The position numbers and the translations under genes were made by a program. 8,137 nt of DNA from Prasinococcaceae sp. CCMP 1430 (Eukaryota > Plantae > Prasinodermophyta). Positions 572-8,048 of this stretch are shown one piece after another (positions within the stretch are counted from its first letter, which is position 1; each line of letters begins with the position of its first letter). The notes under the pieces were generated by a model. It worked only from the letters and a program-made list of their open reading frames with translations. It was not told where the DNA came from and did not search any database. Location of the stretch: positions 260,979 through 269,115 of the forward strand of contig RQSC01000006.1 of NCBI GenBank assembly GCA_013416795.1. The letters are read 5' to 3'.

Positions 572-691
572 GTGCGTGTGTGTGTAAGCGTGTTTGTGCG
601 CGCGCGTGTGTGTGTGCGTGCGCGCGTGTGTGCGCGCCTGGCCTCGATGCGCATGAACTGACGAGCACACGCTCTCGCACGCGTCCGTGCA

Positions 692-732
<41 letters not shown>
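572..732 (+). other. Spliceosomal intron, 3' end lost in the gap
   Basis: Donor GTGCGT at 572, GT-rich 5' half, CTGAC at 658-662, then CA-rich sequence up to the Ns. Confidence 0.75.
695..732 (+). repeat. (AC)19 microsatellite abutting the gap
   Basis: Perfect AC dinucleotide run seen directly; its true length is unknown because of the gap. Confidence 0.95.
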
Positions 733-1638: not shown

Positions 1639-1817
1639 CCCCCCCCCCCCGCCCTTGCCAGAGCGGCCCGCTCACGCGCGGTGCTCCCCCCCCACCCCCA
1701 CCCCGTCGCGAGGCTCTTTCCCTCCGTCCTTGCTCGCGCCGCGGGCGCCGGCGCGCGGGCGCGCGGGCGGGGCGGCGAGCGAGGGCCGGCGCCGGCGCCG
1801 CGGCCGAACGGCGCGAG

Positions 1818-2057
1818 ATGGCGCTCCCGCCCCCAGCGTTGCACCGACAAACGTCGCGCTCGTCGCTCCTCTCGCGCACGTCGCGCACCGAGTCCGAGGT
1901 GTCCGAGTCGGGCTTGCTGCGACGCTACTACTTCAACGCCGCTGGAGACCTCGGCGACGGCAGAGGACGCGGCGGCTGGACGAGCGCGGCAGTGCGGCAC
2001 TACGACGTGGTGCCAGCCTTCCATCACGACGCCGACGGAACGCAGTGGACCAACGAG
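1818..2057 (+). CDS. Coiled-coil protein, exon 1 (80 codons)
   Basis: ATG at 1818, MALPPPALHRQTSRSSLL...GTQWTNE, ending at a strong phase-0 donor GAG|GTACGT. Confidence 0.7.
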
Positions 2058-2227
2058 GTACGTAGCGCGGCGGCCCGGAGCGAGGGAGCGAGAGCGGACC
2101 TCGGCCGCGCGCACCTGTTGGGTCGTGAGGCAGAGGGCGTTTGACGAGTGTCGTCACTGCGCGCACGCGGGTGCGCGTGCTAATCGTAAGCGAACGCTCC
2201 GCGCTGCCTCGCTGCGGGCGCTCGCAG
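2058..2227 (+). other. Spliceosomal intron (170 nt)
   Basis: Donor GTACGT, branch CTAAT at 2180-2184, acceptor CTCGCAG at 2227. Splicing joins ...TNE to YQRLSY... in frame. Confidence 0.75.
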
Positions 2228-3265
2228 TACCAGCGCCTGAGCTACGGAGCCGTCGCGCGCGTGAACGTAGACCAGACGGGCGCGTTCGACGTCGGGGCGC
2301 TCGGCTTCGAGCGGCCGCCGGTGGAGGATGCGTCAACGGGCGGCACAGATGATGAGCGCCTCGCGGCGAGCGTGGCGTGGGAGATTCTGAGCGCGGGTGC
2401 GCCCCTGTCCGCGCAAACGGTGCCCGCGGCAGCGCAGCCTGGCGGGGCGCCTCCCGTTGGCAGCAAGGGGACGACGCCGCTTGGCAAGGCCGACATCCTC
2501 GAGCTCGCGCGCTGGCTGCGCACGGTCGCGCCGCGAGGCCCCGGCGATCTCAAACCGCTTAACGCGCTCCTGCAGGCGCTGCTCCAAGACATGCTCGCGG
2601 GCGATCTCAGCTACTACTGCCGCGAGCTCGCGGCGACACGCGCAGAGCTCAAGGCGGCCCACGTCGGCTTCGACAGCTGGCTAAAAGCAGCCATTGAGGC
2701 GGAGCGTGCCAAAGTAGAGGGAGACGCCAAGAAAGCGGCCGTCCGTGCGAAGCTGAAGGCGGCGCTCGGTCAGTCGATCGCCGCCATCGCGACGTATGAT
2801 GATGCCGAGGACGAAAAGCAAATCAAGAGGCAGCAGGCGGAGCTCGACGTAGCGACCAAGCGCATCCAGGAGCTCGAGATGGCACTCGACCAGGCAAAGG
2901 CTGATTTCCAGCGCTGCGAGACTGACCTGAGCGTCGCCAAGGCGGCGCTCAGAGCTGAGAGGGACGAGCGCGCTGTCCTGAAGGAGGCGCTGAGCGCCGC
3001 CCAAGCCCGCGCGCTGGAGGCCGAGGCCATCGCGACTAGGGATGCCGCCAGGGCGATCGAGGATGCCAAAGCGCAAGCCGAGACGCTCAAGGCCGCGCAG
3101 CTGCAAAAGGTTCAGAGTACAAAGAGGCGCATGGCGGCGGTCCTGGACGTGCCTTTCGCCCGCTTTGCTTTCGATCCGTCAATTCAGTCGCCCGACCCGA
3201 ACTCGATCACCGGCCGGCTGGCGGCTGCGGCAGAAAAGAGCACCACCGAGGCGGCGCGGGCGCGG
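2228..3265 (+). CDS. Coiled-coil protein, exon 2, possibly axonemal dynein light chain domain-like; 3' end not identifiable
   Basis: Protein-like reading frame with a helical segment (TPLGKADILELARWL...DMLAGDLSYYCRELA) and a long A/E/K/R heptad-rich stretch (about 2690-3110). Coding character moves to another frame at about 3266, and this frame has no stop until 4505-4507. Confidence 0.7.
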
Positions 3266-3266
3266 G

Positions 3267-4472
3267 GGCTCGCCGGCGGGCCACCTCCCGGGGGGCCCGG
3301 GCGACGCGTCGCCGCTGCTGTTCTCGCCGCAGATGAACATGGCGCCCATCCCCACGGGCGCGGGCGGCGGCGGCGGGGTCGCCGGGCAGGCGGCGTCGAT
3401 GGCCGAGTTCCCCGCGATGCTCTTCGAGAACCTGGTGCCGTGCGAGTTCGTGTGGCGGCACGGCGGCGCCGAGGTGTCGCTGGAGAGCAGCTTCGACGGC
3501 TGGGGCCAGCGGCACGCGCTCGTGGAGGGGGGCGCGGAGGGCACGGCGACCGCCTCCGAGGACGCGGCGGGGGTGTTCTCCATGGTGCGCCTGCTGCCGC
3601 CCGGGGTGTACCAGTACAAGTTCATCGTCGACGGCGAGTGGCGGGTGTCGCCCGACCTGCCGCAGATGCACGACGCCGAGGGCAACCTCAACAACGTGAT
3701 CGAGGTGGAGTCGGCGCACGGCGCCGCCGGCGCCGTCGCGCGCACCGAGCTCTCGTCGTCGCCGCCGGAGTCGTACACGTCGCCCATGATGCGGCCCGAG
3801 GACTTCGCCAAGGACCCGCCCGTCATGCCGCCGCAGCTCAAGCTCTCGCTGCTCAACCTGCCGTCGTCGGCCGCGCAGCCGACGTCGGCGCACGCGCCGC
3901 CGTCGCTGCCGCGCCCCCAGCACGTCACCCTGGGCCACCACTACCGCTTCGGCGGCCGGCGCCAGGAGAGGGACGGCGCCGACGTCTACGGGACCACGCA
4001 CAGGTACAGGAACAAGTTCATCACGGTGGTCTACTACGCGCCGTCGGAGCAGCTCGCGCAGGCGCAGGTGGCCCAGATGCAGGCGCAGGCGCAGATGGCG
4101 CAGGTCCAGGCGCAGATGGCCGCCCAAGCGCAGGCACAGGCGCAGATCGCCGCGGCGCAGGCGCAGCACGCGCAGGCGCAGGCGCTCGCGCAGCAGCAGC
4201 AACAGCAGCAGCAGCAGCAGCAGGGGCAGGGGCACGGGCACGGGCAGGGGCAGGGGCAGCAAGCACAGCACGCGGCAATGCAGGCGCAGGCGCACGCGCA
4301 GGCGCACGCGCAGGCGCAAGCACACGCGCAGGCGCACGCGCACGCTGCCGCGCAGCAGCATGCGGCCGCGCAGCACGCCGCACAGCAGGCGCAGCACGCC
4401 GCGCAGGCAGCCGCCCTGCAGCAACAGCAGCAGCAGCAGCAGCAGCAGATGCAACGGCCGCCGCAGGCCTAG
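3267..4472 (+). CDS. KINB: SnRK1/AMPK beta regulatory subunit (CBM48 plus beta C-terminal/ASC domain) with a Q/A/H-rich extension; natural 5' end missing, first in-frame ATG after the junction at 3333
   Basis: SPLLFSPQMNMAP matches plant KINbeta SPxLFxPQxPxAP. CBM48: VPCEFVWRHGG...SFDGW...LPPGVYQYKFIVDGEWRVSPDLP...GNLNNVIEV (3435-3707). ASC: SPPESY...EDFAKDPPVMPPQL...PRPQHVTLGHHY...GTTHRYRNKFITVVYYAP (to 4043). Stop TAG at 4470-4472. Confidence 0.92.
   Translation, partial: GSPAGHLPGGPGDASPLLFSPQMNMAPIPTGAGGGGGVAGQAASMAEFPAMLFENLVPCEFVWRHGGAEVSLESSFDGWGQRHALVEGGAEGTATASEDAAGVFSMVRLLPPGVYQYKFIVDGEWRVSPDLPQMHDAEGNLNNVIEVESAHGAAGAVARTELSSSPPESYTSPMMRPEDFAKDPPVMPPQLKLSLLNLPSSAAQPTSAHAPPSLPRPQHVTLGHHYRFGGRRQERDGADVYGTTHRYRNKFITVVYYAPSEQLAQAQVAQMQAQAQMAQVQAQMAAQAQAQAQIAAAQAQHAQAQALAQQQQQQQQQQQGQGHGHGQGQGQQAQHAAMQAQAHAQAHAQAQAHAQAHAHAAAQQHAAAQHAAQQAQHAAQAAALQQQQQQQQQQMQRPPQA
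4191..4223 (+). repeat. CAG/CAA repeat encoding Q11
   Basis: (CAG)3 CAA (CAG)7 in the KINbeta frame. Confidence 0.95.
4419..4448 (+). repeat. CAG/CAA repeat encoding Q10
   Basis: CAG CAA (CAG)8 in the KINbeta frame. Confidence 0.95.
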
Positions 4473-4838
4473 CCCGCCGGCGTGGCTGCGTGCAATTTGC
4501 GTCGTAAACTCTGCCTGCTCACACACGCTTTGGCCTCGAAGTGCGTCCTTGCACGCGCTGCCGCCGCGCCGGCTCGCGCGTTCCTTCAAGACCTCCGGCC
4601 CTCTCACGCGCGCACGCGCGGCCCTCGCGGTCCGCCGTCGCGGACGCAAGCACGCGTGCGCGCGTGGGCGAGGTGGAGGCGCTCGGTCTCAACGTTCATT
4701 GTTTCTATCTATTGTACACGGGCGCGTATGCGCGTGCGCATTCGCGCGTGGGCCCCTGTGCGTTCGCGCGCGTGCCGTGTGCGAGTGTGTGTGCTGTGTG
4801 CAAGCACGCGCGCGCGCGCGCGAACGGCGCTCCCGTCC

Positions 4839-5145
4839 TCAGTGGGCGTGATGTCCCCACCACGGGGGCGGCGCCCACGCCGCGCGTGCGCGCAGCACGG
4901 CGAGCGCCGGCGGCGCCGGAGCCGGCGCCTCCAGCTCCGCGCGCGCGACCTCGGCGCGCACGTCGGCTTCGGCACGGGCACGTCGTGTGCGAGCGTCGAC
5001 CTCCGTCATGAACTCCGCACCGGCGCCGCCAGCTACCGCGGCGGCGCTGCGGCGGCCATGCCAGCGAGGCGGGGCCGCCGGGCCACCGACGCGCGGGTCG
5101 GCGCGGGGGCAGTGGATGGAGTCGTCACGCACACGCGCGTGGCTC
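4839..5145 (-). CDS. Orphan hypothetical protein, last exon
   Basis: Acceptor GCGCATAG| at 5146. The phase-2 join gives R-SHARVRDDSIHCPRADPR...EFMTEVDARTRRARAEADVRAEVARAELE...WWGHHAH, with stop TGA at 4841-4839. Confidence 0.6.
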
Positions 5146-5297
5146 CTATGCGCGTCGTGCGGGTAGAGCGAGCGCGCGAAAGAGAGAGAGAGGAGCATGC
5201 ACGGCAGCACACGGTCAGAAAGCCCTCGCAGCCGCAGCACACGGCCGCGCGCAAGCGCATACGTGTGTGCACGCCGCCACCTCGCGCGCGGGATCAC
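5146..5297 (-). other. Spliceosomal intron (152 nt)
   Basis: Donor AG|GTGATC, branch CTGAC at 5218-5214, (CT)n pyrimidine tract, TAG acceptor; phase consistent with both flanking exons. Confidence 0.6.
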
Positions 5298-5584
5298 CTG
5301 GTGCGGGCGGTCTCCCTCTCGGCCTTCCTCTCCTCGGTCTCCTCGAAGTGCGTCACATCGGATGCCGCGCGGCCGTGCGGTCCGGCGGGCACGGCGAGCG
5401 TGCGCGCGCGCACTTCGCCGCGCGTCACCACCGTGCTACGGCGGGTGTGCTCGCGCGACAGGAGCTCGGCGCGCTCGGAGGCGCGGCGGGCGTTCCAGTC
5501 GGCGAGGGCCGGCCGCGTGACGGCAGAGGACGGGCGCCCGCAGCTCGTGCGGCCGCCCGCGCGCACGTCCGTGTTGTTTGGGAC
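5298..5584 (-). CDS. Orphan hypothetical protein, middle exon
   Basis: VPNNTDVRAGG...RPALADWNARRASERAELLSREH...DVTHFEETEERKAERETART, with G/C-rich third positions and bounded by CCACAG| and |GTGATC. Confidence 0.65.
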
Positions 5585-5727
5585 CTGTGGAGTGCCAGCG
5601 CAGGCGCGCTCAAGCGCTCGCCGTCAGGACGAGATGCGCGCACGCGCGCGAAACGAGCGCACGAGCACGGGCGTACGAGCCCGGGGACGCGAGCCTGCCG
5701 GCAAGCTCGTGCACGTGGCAAGCGCAC
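5585..5727 (-). other. Spliceosomal intron (143 nt)
   Basis: Donor AAG|GTGCGC, branch CTGAC at 5627-5623, acceptor CTCCACAG; phase 0. Confidence 0.7.
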
Positions 5728-5817
5728 CTTGTTGTGGTGGCGCGCCGTCACGTCGGTAGCAGTCCGCCGTGTGCCGCCAAGCGCGCTTTGCGGCCGCGCG
5801 CACTCAGACGGGAGCAG
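5728..5817 (-). CDS. Orphan hypothetical protein, upstream exon; 5' boundary uncertain (could extend to 5855 or 5940); no ATG
   Basis: LLPSECARPQSALGGTRRTATDVTARHHNK is in frame with the middle exon. Candidate acceptor CCGACGCAG at 5818 and candidate upstream donor TGG|GTGCGC at 5940. Confidence 0.45.
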
Positions 5818-5970
5818 CTGCGTCGGGTGGAGGCAGTGCGCCTCAGCGGGCGCGCCTGCGTCCCTCCGGCGCCCGAAGTCGAGCGCCGAACCGAGCGCGC
5901 CCGCCGGCGCCGGGCCGCGCCGCGTCGTCGAGAGGCGCACCCAATTTGATGAGGAATTCGTGAATTGTTC

Positions 5971-5998
5971 AAACCCTATACATCCCTAAACCCTAAAC
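5971..5998 (+). repeat. Interstitial telomere-type repeats / telo-box cluster (CCCTAAA x2 plus a degenerate unit)
   Basis: AAACCCTATACATCCCTAAACCCTAAAC; the minus strand reads GTTTAGGGTTTAGGGATGTATAGGGTTT. Confidence 0.85.
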
Positions 5999-6091
5999 AT
6001 CAAAAAAGAGGCGAGGCGCCTGCCCGTGCATGCGACGGTGCTCTTTCGAAGTTTCAAGAGGGACTGCGTAGTACTACAGACAGCACCGTAC

Positions 6092-6127
6092 CGTAACTGA
6101 AAGAGATTCGCTGCTGCCTTTCTGCAC
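6092..6127 (-). CDS. SPT6: Putative short second exon of SPT6; 3' boundary uncertain
   Basis: After acceptor GATCCACAG (6128) the phase-2 join reads S-CRKAAANLFQLRYG, recalling the 'NHFLLYYG' segment that follows this point in animal Spt6. Candidate donors GTACGG (6091) or GTGCTG (6086). If unspliced, the frame stops at TAG 5988-5986. Confidence 0.4.
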
Positions 6128-6333
6128 CTGTGGATCGCGTCGGCGCCGAAGTGACTCCCGCCAGTGCGCGCGCGCGCGCGCGCGCGCGCCGGCGGGGGCG
6201 GCGAGCAGCAAAGGAAGGGGGAGGGGGTCCCACGCGCGGCGCTCGCCTCCCTCGCGTGCGCGGGCGTGGGAGCGCACGCCTGGTGTGCGCGCTCGCCTGT
6301 GCGTGTGCGTGCGCGCGCGCGCGCGCGCGATAC
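6128..6333 (-). other. Putative SPT6 intron (206 nt) with (GC)n arms
   Basis: Donor TC|GTATCG, (GC)n at 6311-6329 and 6166-6189, pyrimidine-rich middle, acceptor CCACAG. The read-through translation (YRARARAHAH...) is low-complexity and not Spt6-like. Confidence 0.65.
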
Positions 6334-8048
6334 GAGCGCTCGCCAGCCGCCATGGCCTTGACCTCGTCCATCGTGGACATCGGGCGCCCGCTAAGCGTCG
6401 CTGCCGACTTGGCCGCCTCGGCGAAGCCCTCCATGACCTCCATCTGCTTGGATTTGCGCGCCTGCACGATGCCCCACCTTTTGTCCATCTCCTGGACGCG
6501 GTGCAGAGCGCGCCACCTAGCCAGGGATCCCGCACGGTAGTCCTCGGGCACGTCGTCGCTCTCCGCGAGCATCTGCGAGTATTTGTGTGCCTCGAACTCC
6601 AGCTGCGCAGCCGTCCTTGGCGCATCCATATCAAGGAGCGGCCCACACTCGGCTTTGTGCCACATGGCAATCGCAGGCACCTCGAGACGCTCTTCGAGGA
6701 GCAGCTTCAGGACCTTGACGATGTGCTTCGTCACCAACTCCTTCCGACGGCCCTCCTCGACATCCCCCTGCTGCAGGTCGTCCGGCCCAAAGGAGGGGCC
6801 CGCCTGCCCAATCCTGAAGTGCACGCGGTACTCGGGCGCGGTGGGCCCGAAGATGCTGTCGTAAATCCACGCCGCCTCCTTGACGAGATCGCTCTCCCGC
6901 GGTCTCACGCGGAAGCGCTCCTTCTCCAGCGCGCTCGACTGAATGCGCTCCTGGACGCGCTCCGGCAGGTCCTTGCGCGCAATCTTTTGATCGAGCTCTC
7001 CAAGAAAGTGCTGGTCGCGAATGGCAGGCTCCACTGTGTCCATCTGCTTACGCTGCGTCGGGGCCTCGTCCTCCTCCATCTCGTCCTCGTCGCGGGCGGC
7101 CTCGCCCTCCCTCTGTTTCGCGCGCGCCTGCGCGTACATATCAAGCATGTTGTCGGCGTCGCCGAAGATGTCCGTCGCCTCCTGCAGCTGCACGGCGTTG
7201 AAGCGCCCGGTGCCCTTGGGGCGCCTCTTCTTCTTGCGCTTGATCGGAAGGCCGTCCGGCCCGAGCTCCTCGTCATCGTCCGCGATGAAGTCAGCCATCT
7301 CGTCCTCGTCATCGTCGAAGAGGTCCTCCTCCTCCTCTCGCTTACGCAGCGGCTCGCCCTCATCACCGCTGTCGTCATCCCCGAAAAGGTCGGCCTCGAG
7401 TGCCTCCGCGTCGTCCACTGGCTGCTTGCCCTTGGCGTCCCCGTCACCCGCCTTGCGCAGGCGCTTGCGCTGGCCCTGCGCTGGCTTCGCGGGGCGCTTG
7501 AAGCCCGTCACCTGGTTTTCCTGCAGGAGCTCGTAGTCCTCCTCGTCAAGCTCCTGGTCCTTCTCAAAATCCTCGCTGTCCTCGGATGCCGCATCGTCGC
7601 CCGCGTCCGGCTCGGCGTCCTCGTCCCGCACGATGACATCGTCCTCCTCGTAGCCGGCGCCGCCGGCGGCCTCAAGCGCCCGCTCCTTCGCCTTGAGCTC
7701 CGCATCCTCCGCGGCATCGGCGGCGCCCTCCGCGTCACCGCCCTTGACGGCGGCCTCACTCAGGAAGCCGCGGGCATCGCCCTCCTCCTCCAGAAGCTCG
7801 TCCTCCTCCTCATCCTCGTCGTCGAGCACGGTCGCGTGACGCTTCTTCACCGGCGGTCGCGCGGCCGCGGCGGTAGGTCCGTCGCCACCGGAGCCGCCGG
7901 CGTCGTCGCCGTCGCCCGCAGCGGCAGCAGCGTCCGCGGGCTCGTCCGCAAGATCGTCGAGGAGCTCATCCTTCTCCTCCTCCTCAGGCCCGGCGTCATC
8001 TCCCGGCACCTCCTCCGCGGGCGCGTCCCTCTCCGGCGAGTCCGCCAT
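6334..8048 (-). CDS. SPT6: Transcription elongation factor / histone chaperone Spt6, N-terminal about 572 aa only (acidic region plus start of the core)
   Basis: Conserved Spt6 motifs in the expected order: ELDEEDYELLQEN, DEMADFIADDD, LQEATDIFG, VEP...HFL..LDQKIARKDLPERVQER, LVKEAAWIY, IVKVLKLLLEERLEVPAIAMWHK, ALHRVQEMDKRWGIVQARK. ATG at 8048. Confidence 0.95.

Follow-up and report, generated by a model that had tools for sequence, protein, structure and literature searches.

The window, the whole stretch of 8,137 nucleotides analysed here, is part of contig RQSC01000006.1 from the assembly of Prasinococcaceae sp. CCMP 1430. It holds a coiled-coil gene and a KINbeta gene (SnRK1/AMPK beta subunit) on the plus strand, part of an SPT6 gene on the minus strand and, between the last two, a doubtful small 'orphan'. 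The features are arranged as follows.

733–1638, no strand: run of 906 N, read directly as a scaffolding gap that marks a scaffolded draft assembly
1818–2057, plus strand: exon 1 of the coiled-coil gene, with ATG at 1818 and donor GT at 2058, 99% identical to the wild contigs L002, L004 and L005
2228–3257, plus strand: exon 2 of the coiled-coil gene, with coding signal in frame +2, cut mid-exon at 3257 where the wild contigs run on
3257–3258, no strand: junction A, a razor-sharp break with the frames offset by +1, placed by comparison with the three wild contigs
3258–4472, plus strand: KINbeta without its start exon, recognized by its Pfam domains and by 77% identity to a wild relative (protein P0008, contig L001)
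about 3435–3713, plus strand: CBM48 of KINbeta
about 3804–4043, plus strand: ASC/AMPKBI domain of KINbeta
4044–4469, plus strand: Q/A/H-rich tail of KINbeta, followed by the stop codon at 4470–4472
4473–4838, no strand: non-coding spacer after the KINbeta stop, with no coding signal in any frame
4839–5566, minus strand: the 'orphan', two short stretches of weak signal, namely a 56-aa ATG ORF (5009 to 4839) and a piece from 5566 to 5294 with GT after 5294
5567–5940, no strand: GC-rich stretch without signal in the coding scan
5941–6110, no strand: AT-richer island (GC 0.48) that includes two perfect units of telomere type, CCCTAAACCCTAAA, at 5984–5997
6111–6344, no strand: intron-like stretch rich in (GC)n/(GT)n microsatellites (repeats D10, D13, D16 and I1–I14)
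6345–8048, minus strand: 5' third only of SPT6 (acidic N-terminal region and adjoining conserved stretch), with ATG at 8048, recognized by homology

The two exons of the coiled-coil gene, separated by an intron at 2058–2227, have close counterparts in wild DNA of the same species, on three independent contigs, one derived from a TARA metagenome and two from Logan runs. Spliced exons were searched and aligned singly, not as joined models. All three contigs remain colinear with the window as far as base 3257, the last mismatch lying at 3186, and show 99.1–99.4% identity to it over the 1436–1527 nucleotides that lead up to this position. With 8–14 differences from each of them, the window represents a distinct haplotype. 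At 3257 colinearity is lost abruptly and completely: the wild contigs all read GAGGCGGCGC followed by AAATGATCC, whereas the window reads GAGGCGGCGC followed by GGGCGCGGGGG, and identity over the next 60 nucleotides is 22%. The wild exon runs straight on at this point, with no intron, and about 570 further codons complete an intact protein of 946 aa (P0128), of which the window copy reaches only residue 380 or so. The mutual agreement of the wild contigs amounts to 99.3–99.96% and extends past the break.

The intact protein belongs to a cluster of 18 public sequences; of the 15 listed, two are shorter pieces and 13 have the complete 946 aa. A homologue of 967 aa (P0129, 40% identical) matched the front region searched over 97% of its length; read by eye, it also possesses the downstream part absent from the window, and it carries no KINbeta domains. 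The wild contigs stop approximately 1 kb past the coiled-coil stop codon, inside a gene for a pentapeptide-repeat protein, and there is no SPT6 sequence within that interval. This minus-strand gene was considered as the 3' end of SPT6 and rejected once its pentapeptide-repeat product was recognized. The gene order around the homologue in the 40% relative (contig L006, 7.6 kb) differs from that of the wild contigs, and SPT6 is absent from L006 too.

Downstream of junction A, the identity of KINbeta is secured by a CBM48 domain (Pfam PF16561, E = 5.9e-25) and a C-terminal ASC/AMPKBI domain (PF04739, E = 1e-16), both above the curated cut-offs. The protein shares with plant KINbeta1/2 the CBM48 glycogen-binding module, the C-terminal ASC/AMPKBI domain and an SPLxF(S/A)PQ motif before the CBM. 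It departs from them in a tail rich in Q, A and H, about 142 residues long, after the normally terminal strand, a tail of the same kind but shorter being present in the 77% relative, and in the lack of an adjacent N-terminal myristoylated MGN segment. Each of the six full-length KINbeta proteins from the green lineage that were aligned has an MGN/MGQ start, and in canonical members the MGN lies about 25–50 residues before the position equivalent to the junction. In the window the KINbeta reading frame opens at junction A, and the KINbeta-derived sequence has no in-frame ATG before the SPLxFxPQ motif. The codons ahead of ATG 3333 are coding, as DASPLLFSPQ is conserved relative to L001 with synonymous Ser and Leu changes. 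In L001 the homologous exon starts within about 3 nt of the junction-equivalent position, the start codon lies farther upstream, and no coiled-coil sequence precedes the gene. The missing MG(N/Q) start, the myristoylation site, is attributed to truncation of the assembly copy and not to the real gene. A likeness between L001 174–205 and window positions 3229–3260 ('KAPPERR'/'KRAPPRRR') was dismissed as too short and too GC-rich. A further contig, L003, shares 64 identical bases with KINbeta; as a metagenome contig that is chimeric in its own right, it is no guide to the natural locus.

Codons start at 3257 in the coiled-coil gene and at 3258 in KINbeta, exactly one base apart, and because the frames differ by one base the join gives no sensible protein. 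Small-intron models that would bridge the two frames have poor donors and are unneeded given the wild contigs. A search of the public collection that spanned 433–1379 aa returned no cluster for the chimeric ORF of 778/788 aa, and exact look-ups of the junction-spanning window ORFs (664 aa and 476 aa) found none on record.

The 'orphan' is an uncertain gene candidate, judged on its sequence. Its two stretches have codon log-odds of 9.4 and 13.4, against 15–36 for real genes; it has no Pfam match, its protein-atlas recognition score is low (1254), and a minus-strand ATG sought in 5359–5982 was not found. Its equation with the MOSC gene found downstream of KINbeta in L001 was rejected, as the two show no similarity. 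The telomere-type match in the neighbouring island has a chance expectation of 0.01 and recurs, as AAACCCTAA, in an intergenic stretch of L001; the island as a whole (5941–6110), with its motif resembling a telo-box, has the look of promoter or intergenic DNA. Searches for tRNAs and Rfam families yielded no matches.

SPT6 is a conserved, essential transcription elongation factor and histone chaperone. The acidic region in the window (SPT6_acidic, PF14632) scores 21.1 bits, just below the curated cut-off of 24.4. Together with the next conserved stretch it aligns with plant SPT6 (30% identity to residues 95–453; BLASTP 8e-27 to a fragment) and with an algal relative of 1616 aa, P0158 (51% identity to residues 1–333, 2e-95), whose ORF begins at window residue 251. 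The gene is cut after about 570 residues. When the entire 1616-aa P0158 was compared with the window by tblastn, residues 1–341 alone were matched: the remaining 1280 or so are absent from both strands, leaving about the first third of the gene, and neither the core (HtH, YqgF, HhH, DLD, S1) nor the C-terminal tandem SH2 is present in the window. Junction B falls within 5570–6345, in or at the edge of the microsatellite stretch. Its most likely position is 6344/6345, because homology to P0158 ends there (...AAGER, base 6345); the exact position is not fixed, as the searches yielded no SPT6 contig of the same species. The SPT6 segment adjoining junction B found no relative in a JGI metagenome scan, and P0158 has no contig on record.

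These observations refine a preliminary description of the locus, which had proposed that a single cassette bearing two gene 3' ends had replaced the stretch between two gene 5' ends. Its junctions, set at 3266 and 6091, move to 3257/3258 and probably 6344/6345. Its statements that the coiled-coil gene and SPT6 have starts and lack natural ends, and that strand is kept at both junctions, are confirmed: ATG codons are found at 1818 and 8048, and the wild contigs and P0158 run longer. The reciprocal claim for the inner genes, with stops and without starts, is valid for KINbeta (stop at 4470–4472, no MGN) and weak for the 'orphan', whose last ORF has an in-frame ATG. Likewise, the proposal that each junction could be brought into frame by one base or one splice agrees with the one-base offset at junction A; at junction B the splice is speculation because the 'orphan' and SPT6 lie about 770 nt apart, with no coding signal in between. 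The reported heterogeneity in GC3 is real, with values of 1.00 for the KINbeta core, 0.81 for the coiled-coil gene and 0.85 for SPT6. As to the cassette, a block of about 3 kb is indeed foreign to both flanks and accounts for the truncated genes; the term 'replacement' is doubtful, as the wild downstream neighbour of the coiled-coil gene is the pentapeptide-repeat gene.

Both outer genes thus end partway compared with their natural full-length counterparts, KINbeta is missing the segment that holds its start, and the break at junction A is razor-sharp and shifts the frame. The truncation pattern is genuine in the assembly sequence for these three genes and weak for the 'orphan', and we consider it, with a probability of roughly 85%, to be an assembly artefact and not gene scrambling. 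The scaffolding chimera that had been listed as an equal alternative is favoured over the biological readings by the wild contigs and the truncated SPT6. The stretch would be a chimera in a scaffolded draft of a GC-rich marine green picoalga, in which a piece of some other locus, about 3.1 kb long (3258 to roughly 6344), was set between the ends of two unrelated contigs with no N's to mark the joins, the left contig breaking off inside the coiled-coil gene (3257) and the right one inside SPT6 (6345). The inserted piece would comprise KINbeta from its second coding segment on, downstream non-coding DNA and the doubtful small ORF. An assembler, scaffolder or gap-closer would have made the joins, probably helped by the GC-rich low-complexity sequence at both borders (repeats at 3254–3281 and 6159–6342). 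The 3' 1.7 kb of the coiled-coil gene, the 3' 4 kb or so of SPT6 and the KINbeta start exon would then sit elsewhere in the true genome. The flanks may not be neighbours at all, since the wild contigs have the pentapeptide-repeat gene and not SPT6 downstream of the coiled-coil gene; the window would then be three pieces in a row.

The picture resembles chimeric joins known from scaffolded or gap-closed drafts in its sharp loss of colinearity, here with independent same-species assemblies and at one position, in the truncation of genes on both sides of a non-functional, out-of-frame join, in the low-complexity borders and in the nearby scaffolding gap, which ends 1.6 kb from junction A. The arrangement is missing from independent data, the strain's own reads probably lying outside the public collection. 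A difference from such joins is that neither of those in the window is marked by N's. Three observations point away from a misjoin. Neither junction has N's; the wild contigs represent other strains, 0.6–0.9% divergent, which leaves a slight chance of a strain-specific rearrangement; and junction A lies only a few bases from where a KINbeta exon begins in the relative, which would be surprising if the misjoin were random.

The joining of two gene 5' parts to two other 3' parts on the same strand is also reminiscent of reciprocal translocations and exon-shuffling fusions. The gene scrambling, translocation or fusion transcripts first envisaged are disfavoured: the join is out of frame, the coiled-coil gene is intact in all wild assemblies recovered, the chimeric ORFs were not found in the public collection, and no reciprocal locus, transcript or second assembly supports the candidate. 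A real rearrangement in the sequenced strain or genome appears improbable. It would have deleted the 3' ends of SPT6 and the coiled-coil gene at a break and filled that break with 3.1 kb copied or transferred from the KINbeta locus. Double-breakpoint translocation and templated insertion were the forms considered. The joins are gapless and strand-preserving, the short GC-rich similarity at both borders (repeat family D9) could act as microhomology, and the distinct haplotype would allow a private variant. Such an event, however, would wreck both the essential SPT6 and the conserved 946-aa gene and leave KINbeta start-less, with an out-of-frame join, in an arrangement that occurs in none of the public assemblies carrying the locus; the assembly is, moreover, gapped. 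Neither a target-site-like duplication nor a meaningful inverted repeat bracketing the block was found. A private rearrangement, if true, would mean that SPT6 is present in another, intact copy or that the cells are heterozygous or polyploid; the host picoalga is generally treated as haploid.

A genuine coiled-coil–KINbeta fusion gene, in which the coiled coil forms a long N-terminal extension and the frames are reconciled by a small intron or by a one-base sequencing error near G runs, is very unlikely. A one-base change would indeed align the frames, but this proposal is already contradicted by L002, L004 and L005: the coiled-coil gene has 570 more residues in each of the wild contigs that are full-length. 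It is also at odds with the 967-aa homologue, which has no KINbeta domains, with the relative's KINbeta contig, which has no coiled-coil sequence upstream, and with the position of the canonical MGN start. We give still less credence to the view that the locus is ordinary and that introns not yet recognized would make all four genes complete. Microsatellite-rich introns are numerous in this genome, and one is confirmed in the coiled-coil gene; yet the wild contigs show no coiled-coil intron at 3257, the window contains no other SPT6 segment on either strand, and the stretch below 1817, on the minus strand, is taken up by a plus-strand gene and a gap.

Retrieval of wild same-species contigs through the protein that flanks a junction proved a cheap check and was decisive for one side. 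Were the arrangement real, this early-diverging green alga would offer a rare case of a double-breakpoint segment swap that hits an essential gene. Read as an artefact, which we prefer, the arrangement would render spurious the gene models that cross 3257/3258 and about 6344/6345, namely a coiled-coil–KINbeta 'fusion', a 'short SPT6' and a 'start-less KINbeta'.

The 8137 bases of the window are approximately 70% GC, and the spliceosomal introns read from the sequence are rich in microsatellites, which, together with a run of N, identifies the stretch as part of a scaffolded eukaryote draft. The published genome of P. coloniale, a PacBio assembly of 22 chromosomes, has a GC content of 69.8% (PMC7455551); the N-containing assembly behind the window is presumably a separate one and more fragmented. 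Codon usage, scanned with verified coding sequence as the training set, resolved the window into four clear blocks: three coding blocks, listed below, and one without coding signal (4473 to ~4890 and 5570 to 6340). Exons were searched and aligned separately, not as joined spliced models. The features that concern the two borders are the following.

733-1638: run of 906 N, a scaffolding gap
~2190 to 3270, + strand, frame +2: coiled-coil gene (codon-usage scan)
~3270 to 4470, + strand, frame +0: KINbeta, the SnRK1/AMPK beta subunit (codon-usage scan)
5941-6110: AT-richer island, GC 0.48, with CCCTAAACCCTAAA at 5984-5997
Beyond this island, reading the - strand: GC-rich DNA without coding signal
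6345 down to 6111, - strand: (GC)n/(CA)n microsatellite sequence
6345 to 8048, - strand: SPT6 (codon-usage scan)

Pfam searches detected AMPK1_CBM (5.9e-25) and AMPKBI (1e-16) on KINbeta and a sub-threshold SPT6_acidic match on the minus-strand SPT6 ORF, with zero matches for the coiled-coil pieces. Between KINbeta and SPT6 the minus strand displays only two short and modest codon signals (4890-5009 and 5310-5429), previously described as an orphan gene; ATG is absent from this strand at 5359-5982, and an in-frame ATG opens an ORF of 56 aa running from 5009 to 4839. The preliminary description counted the orphan as a fourth anomaly, but its weak codon signal, its low recognition score in a protein atlas and the lack of any Pfam match to its pieces make its gene status doubtful, and it carries little weight. 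At the left end of the window, two plus-strand exons (120-250 and 380-570) of a FAD-dependent monooxygenase-like gene, bearing the dinucleotide-binding motif GAGPCGALLAAALARAGWQVDVFDR and also FNVVLTPRGVRALDAAG, are separated by GT/GC-microsatellite introns, and the gene enters the N run.

At junction A (3257|3258), where the coiled-coil gene meets KINbeta, the window departs abruptly from wild sequences. A word search retrieved a protein of 946 aa (P0128) that is 99% identical across the whole coiled-coil region, as well as a 40% identical homologue of 967 aa (P0129). The source of P0128 is L002, a TARA Oceans metagenome scaffold of 4205 bp without N, whose bases 1-1441 correspond to window 1817-3257 with 9 mismatches and 0 gaps; beyond this point similarity stops. 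Two contigs from Logan assemblies of different runs, L004 and L005, likewise match the window to this position and then break from it: all three contigs read GAGGCGGCGC|AAATGATCC, whereas the window reads GAGGCGGCGC|GGGCGCGGGGG. The final mismatch ahead of the junction lies at 3186. In the first 60 bases past it the window and the wild contigs share 22% identity, and the latter are 99.3–99.96% identical to one another across 2.5 kb past the break. The 90% cluster of P0128 comprises 18 members (ENA and Logan); among the 15 listed, 13 are full 946-aa proteins and two are shorter pieces. Contigs and cluster together indicate that the natural coiled-coil gene continues for ~570 codons with no intron at 3257, and that the window copy is cut mid-exon. 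As codons start at 3257 in the coiled-coil gene and at 3258 in KINbeta, the join is one base out of frame and KINbeta would be translated as nonsense. The resulting chimeric ORF of 778/788 aa was not found in public assemblies by the same word search, which spanned 433–1379 aa and would have returned any assembly containing it.

The closest KINbeta relative, P0008 (77% identical), is located on L001, a 3.5-kb metagenome contig whose match to the window begins at 3259 and runs onward. The peptide DASPLLFSPQ is identical in both despite synonymous changes (TCG/AGC for serine, and leucine codons), showing that the codons directly ahead of ATG 3333 are coding. It is the counterpart of SPLxF(S/A)PQ, a motif shared by KINbeta proteins of plants and algae, which in all six full-length proteins aligned is preceded, 25–50 residues upstream, by an MGN or MGQ start. 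The window frame opens at junction A (GRGGSPAGHLPGG...) and thus lacks this segment. In L001 a TGA closes the frame 18 nt upstream of the sole available acceptor (AG 317-318), which places the beginning of the homologous exon at L001:319 (~window 3255) and the start exon further upstream. GC3 reaches 1.00 in the KINbeta core (3333-4040, 236 codons), compared with 0.81 in the coiled-coil gene and 0.85 in SPT6. No same-species KINbeta ORF of 262–833 aa was found in public assemblies, which may be explained by the CAG/GCG repeats of the tail.

This Q/A/H-rich tail extends ~142 residues (4044-4469) past the normal C-terminus; P0008 also carries a terminal tail, shorter and Q/A/M-rich, which makes the extension a lineage feature, not an artefact. 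A 211-nt intron after MNMAPIPK in L001 (418-628) is missing from the window (3356-3357) and is a presence/absence difference between close lineages. L003, a 10-kb metagenome contig (ERZ842040), shares 64 identical KINbeta bases with the window (644-707 and 3412-3475, respectively), flanked by a bacterial ORF of low GC that resembles YscJ/FliF and by GC-rich sequence of algal type; on the right side identity stops 2 nt past GAG, at GT. L003 is itself a chimera.

On the opposite flank, a large profile-free search queried by the SPT6 ORF identified a 57% identical relative, P0158, whose residues 1-326 align with query 251-564. The BLASTP alignment reaches ...AAGER (base 6345), and P0158 extends ~1280 residues more; tblastn with P0158 detected no further SPT6 segments in the window, and a plant SPT6 fragment aligns with the same N-terminal part. 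The gene call for P0158 is a single ORF of 1616 aa without interruption, which makes SPT6 largely intronless in that relative. A candidate donor at 6345 (TC|GTATCG) is weaker than other donors in the window. A search for a same-species SPT6 contig recovered none; junction B, the right border, is thus bounded only to 5570-6345, and most likely falls at 6344|6345.

The preliminary description attributed these anomalies to one cassette replacing the interval between the outer genes, a proposal that the flanks do not establish. In the wild contigs the gene converging on the coiled-coil gene, where the contigs end, encodes a pentapeptide-repeat protein, not SPT6, and in the 40% relative a contig of 7.6 kb presents yet another neighbourhood. 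Head-to-tail joining of three unrelated pieces accounts for the data equally well. As read from sequence, all features indicate an assembly chimera: a razor-sharp join disrupts the frame, damage extends to three conserved genes, SPT6 among them, the coiled-coil gene is intact in all recovered wild assemblies, the public collection contains no chimeric ORFs, and GC-rich low-complexity sequence occupies both borders, with a scaffolding gap nearby. SPT6 is an essential gene. To a rearrangement private to the sequenced strain we assign a small probability. Junction A lies oddly close to a KINbeta exon start, a proximity that contigs breaking in the repeat-rich intron just upstream may account for.

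The coiled-coil gene (L002:361-3201) specifies a conserved product of 946–967 aa without Pfam domain; its lineage-specific family includes 18 near-identical wild sequences and, at 40% identity, a cluster of 21 members. Almost all independently assembled short-read contigs covering this locus (L002, L004, L005 and cluster members; 3.9–4.35 kb) end at similar places, namely a GC/poly-C stretch at ~window 1731-1822 and 0.7–1.0 kb past the coiled-coil stop, and illustrate how sequences of this type fragment assemblies of this genome.

Two telomere-type CCCTAAA units at window 5984-5997 and AAACCCTAA at L001:3095-3103 both reside in AT-richer intergenic DNA. The window motif is more probably an intergenic or promoter element of the telo-box type than a healed chromosome end, given that it comprises no more than two perfect units and that its nonamer recurs in an intergenic stretch of L001. 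Its occurrence in both the window and a relative hints at plant-type telo-box promoter elements in this early-diverging green lineage.
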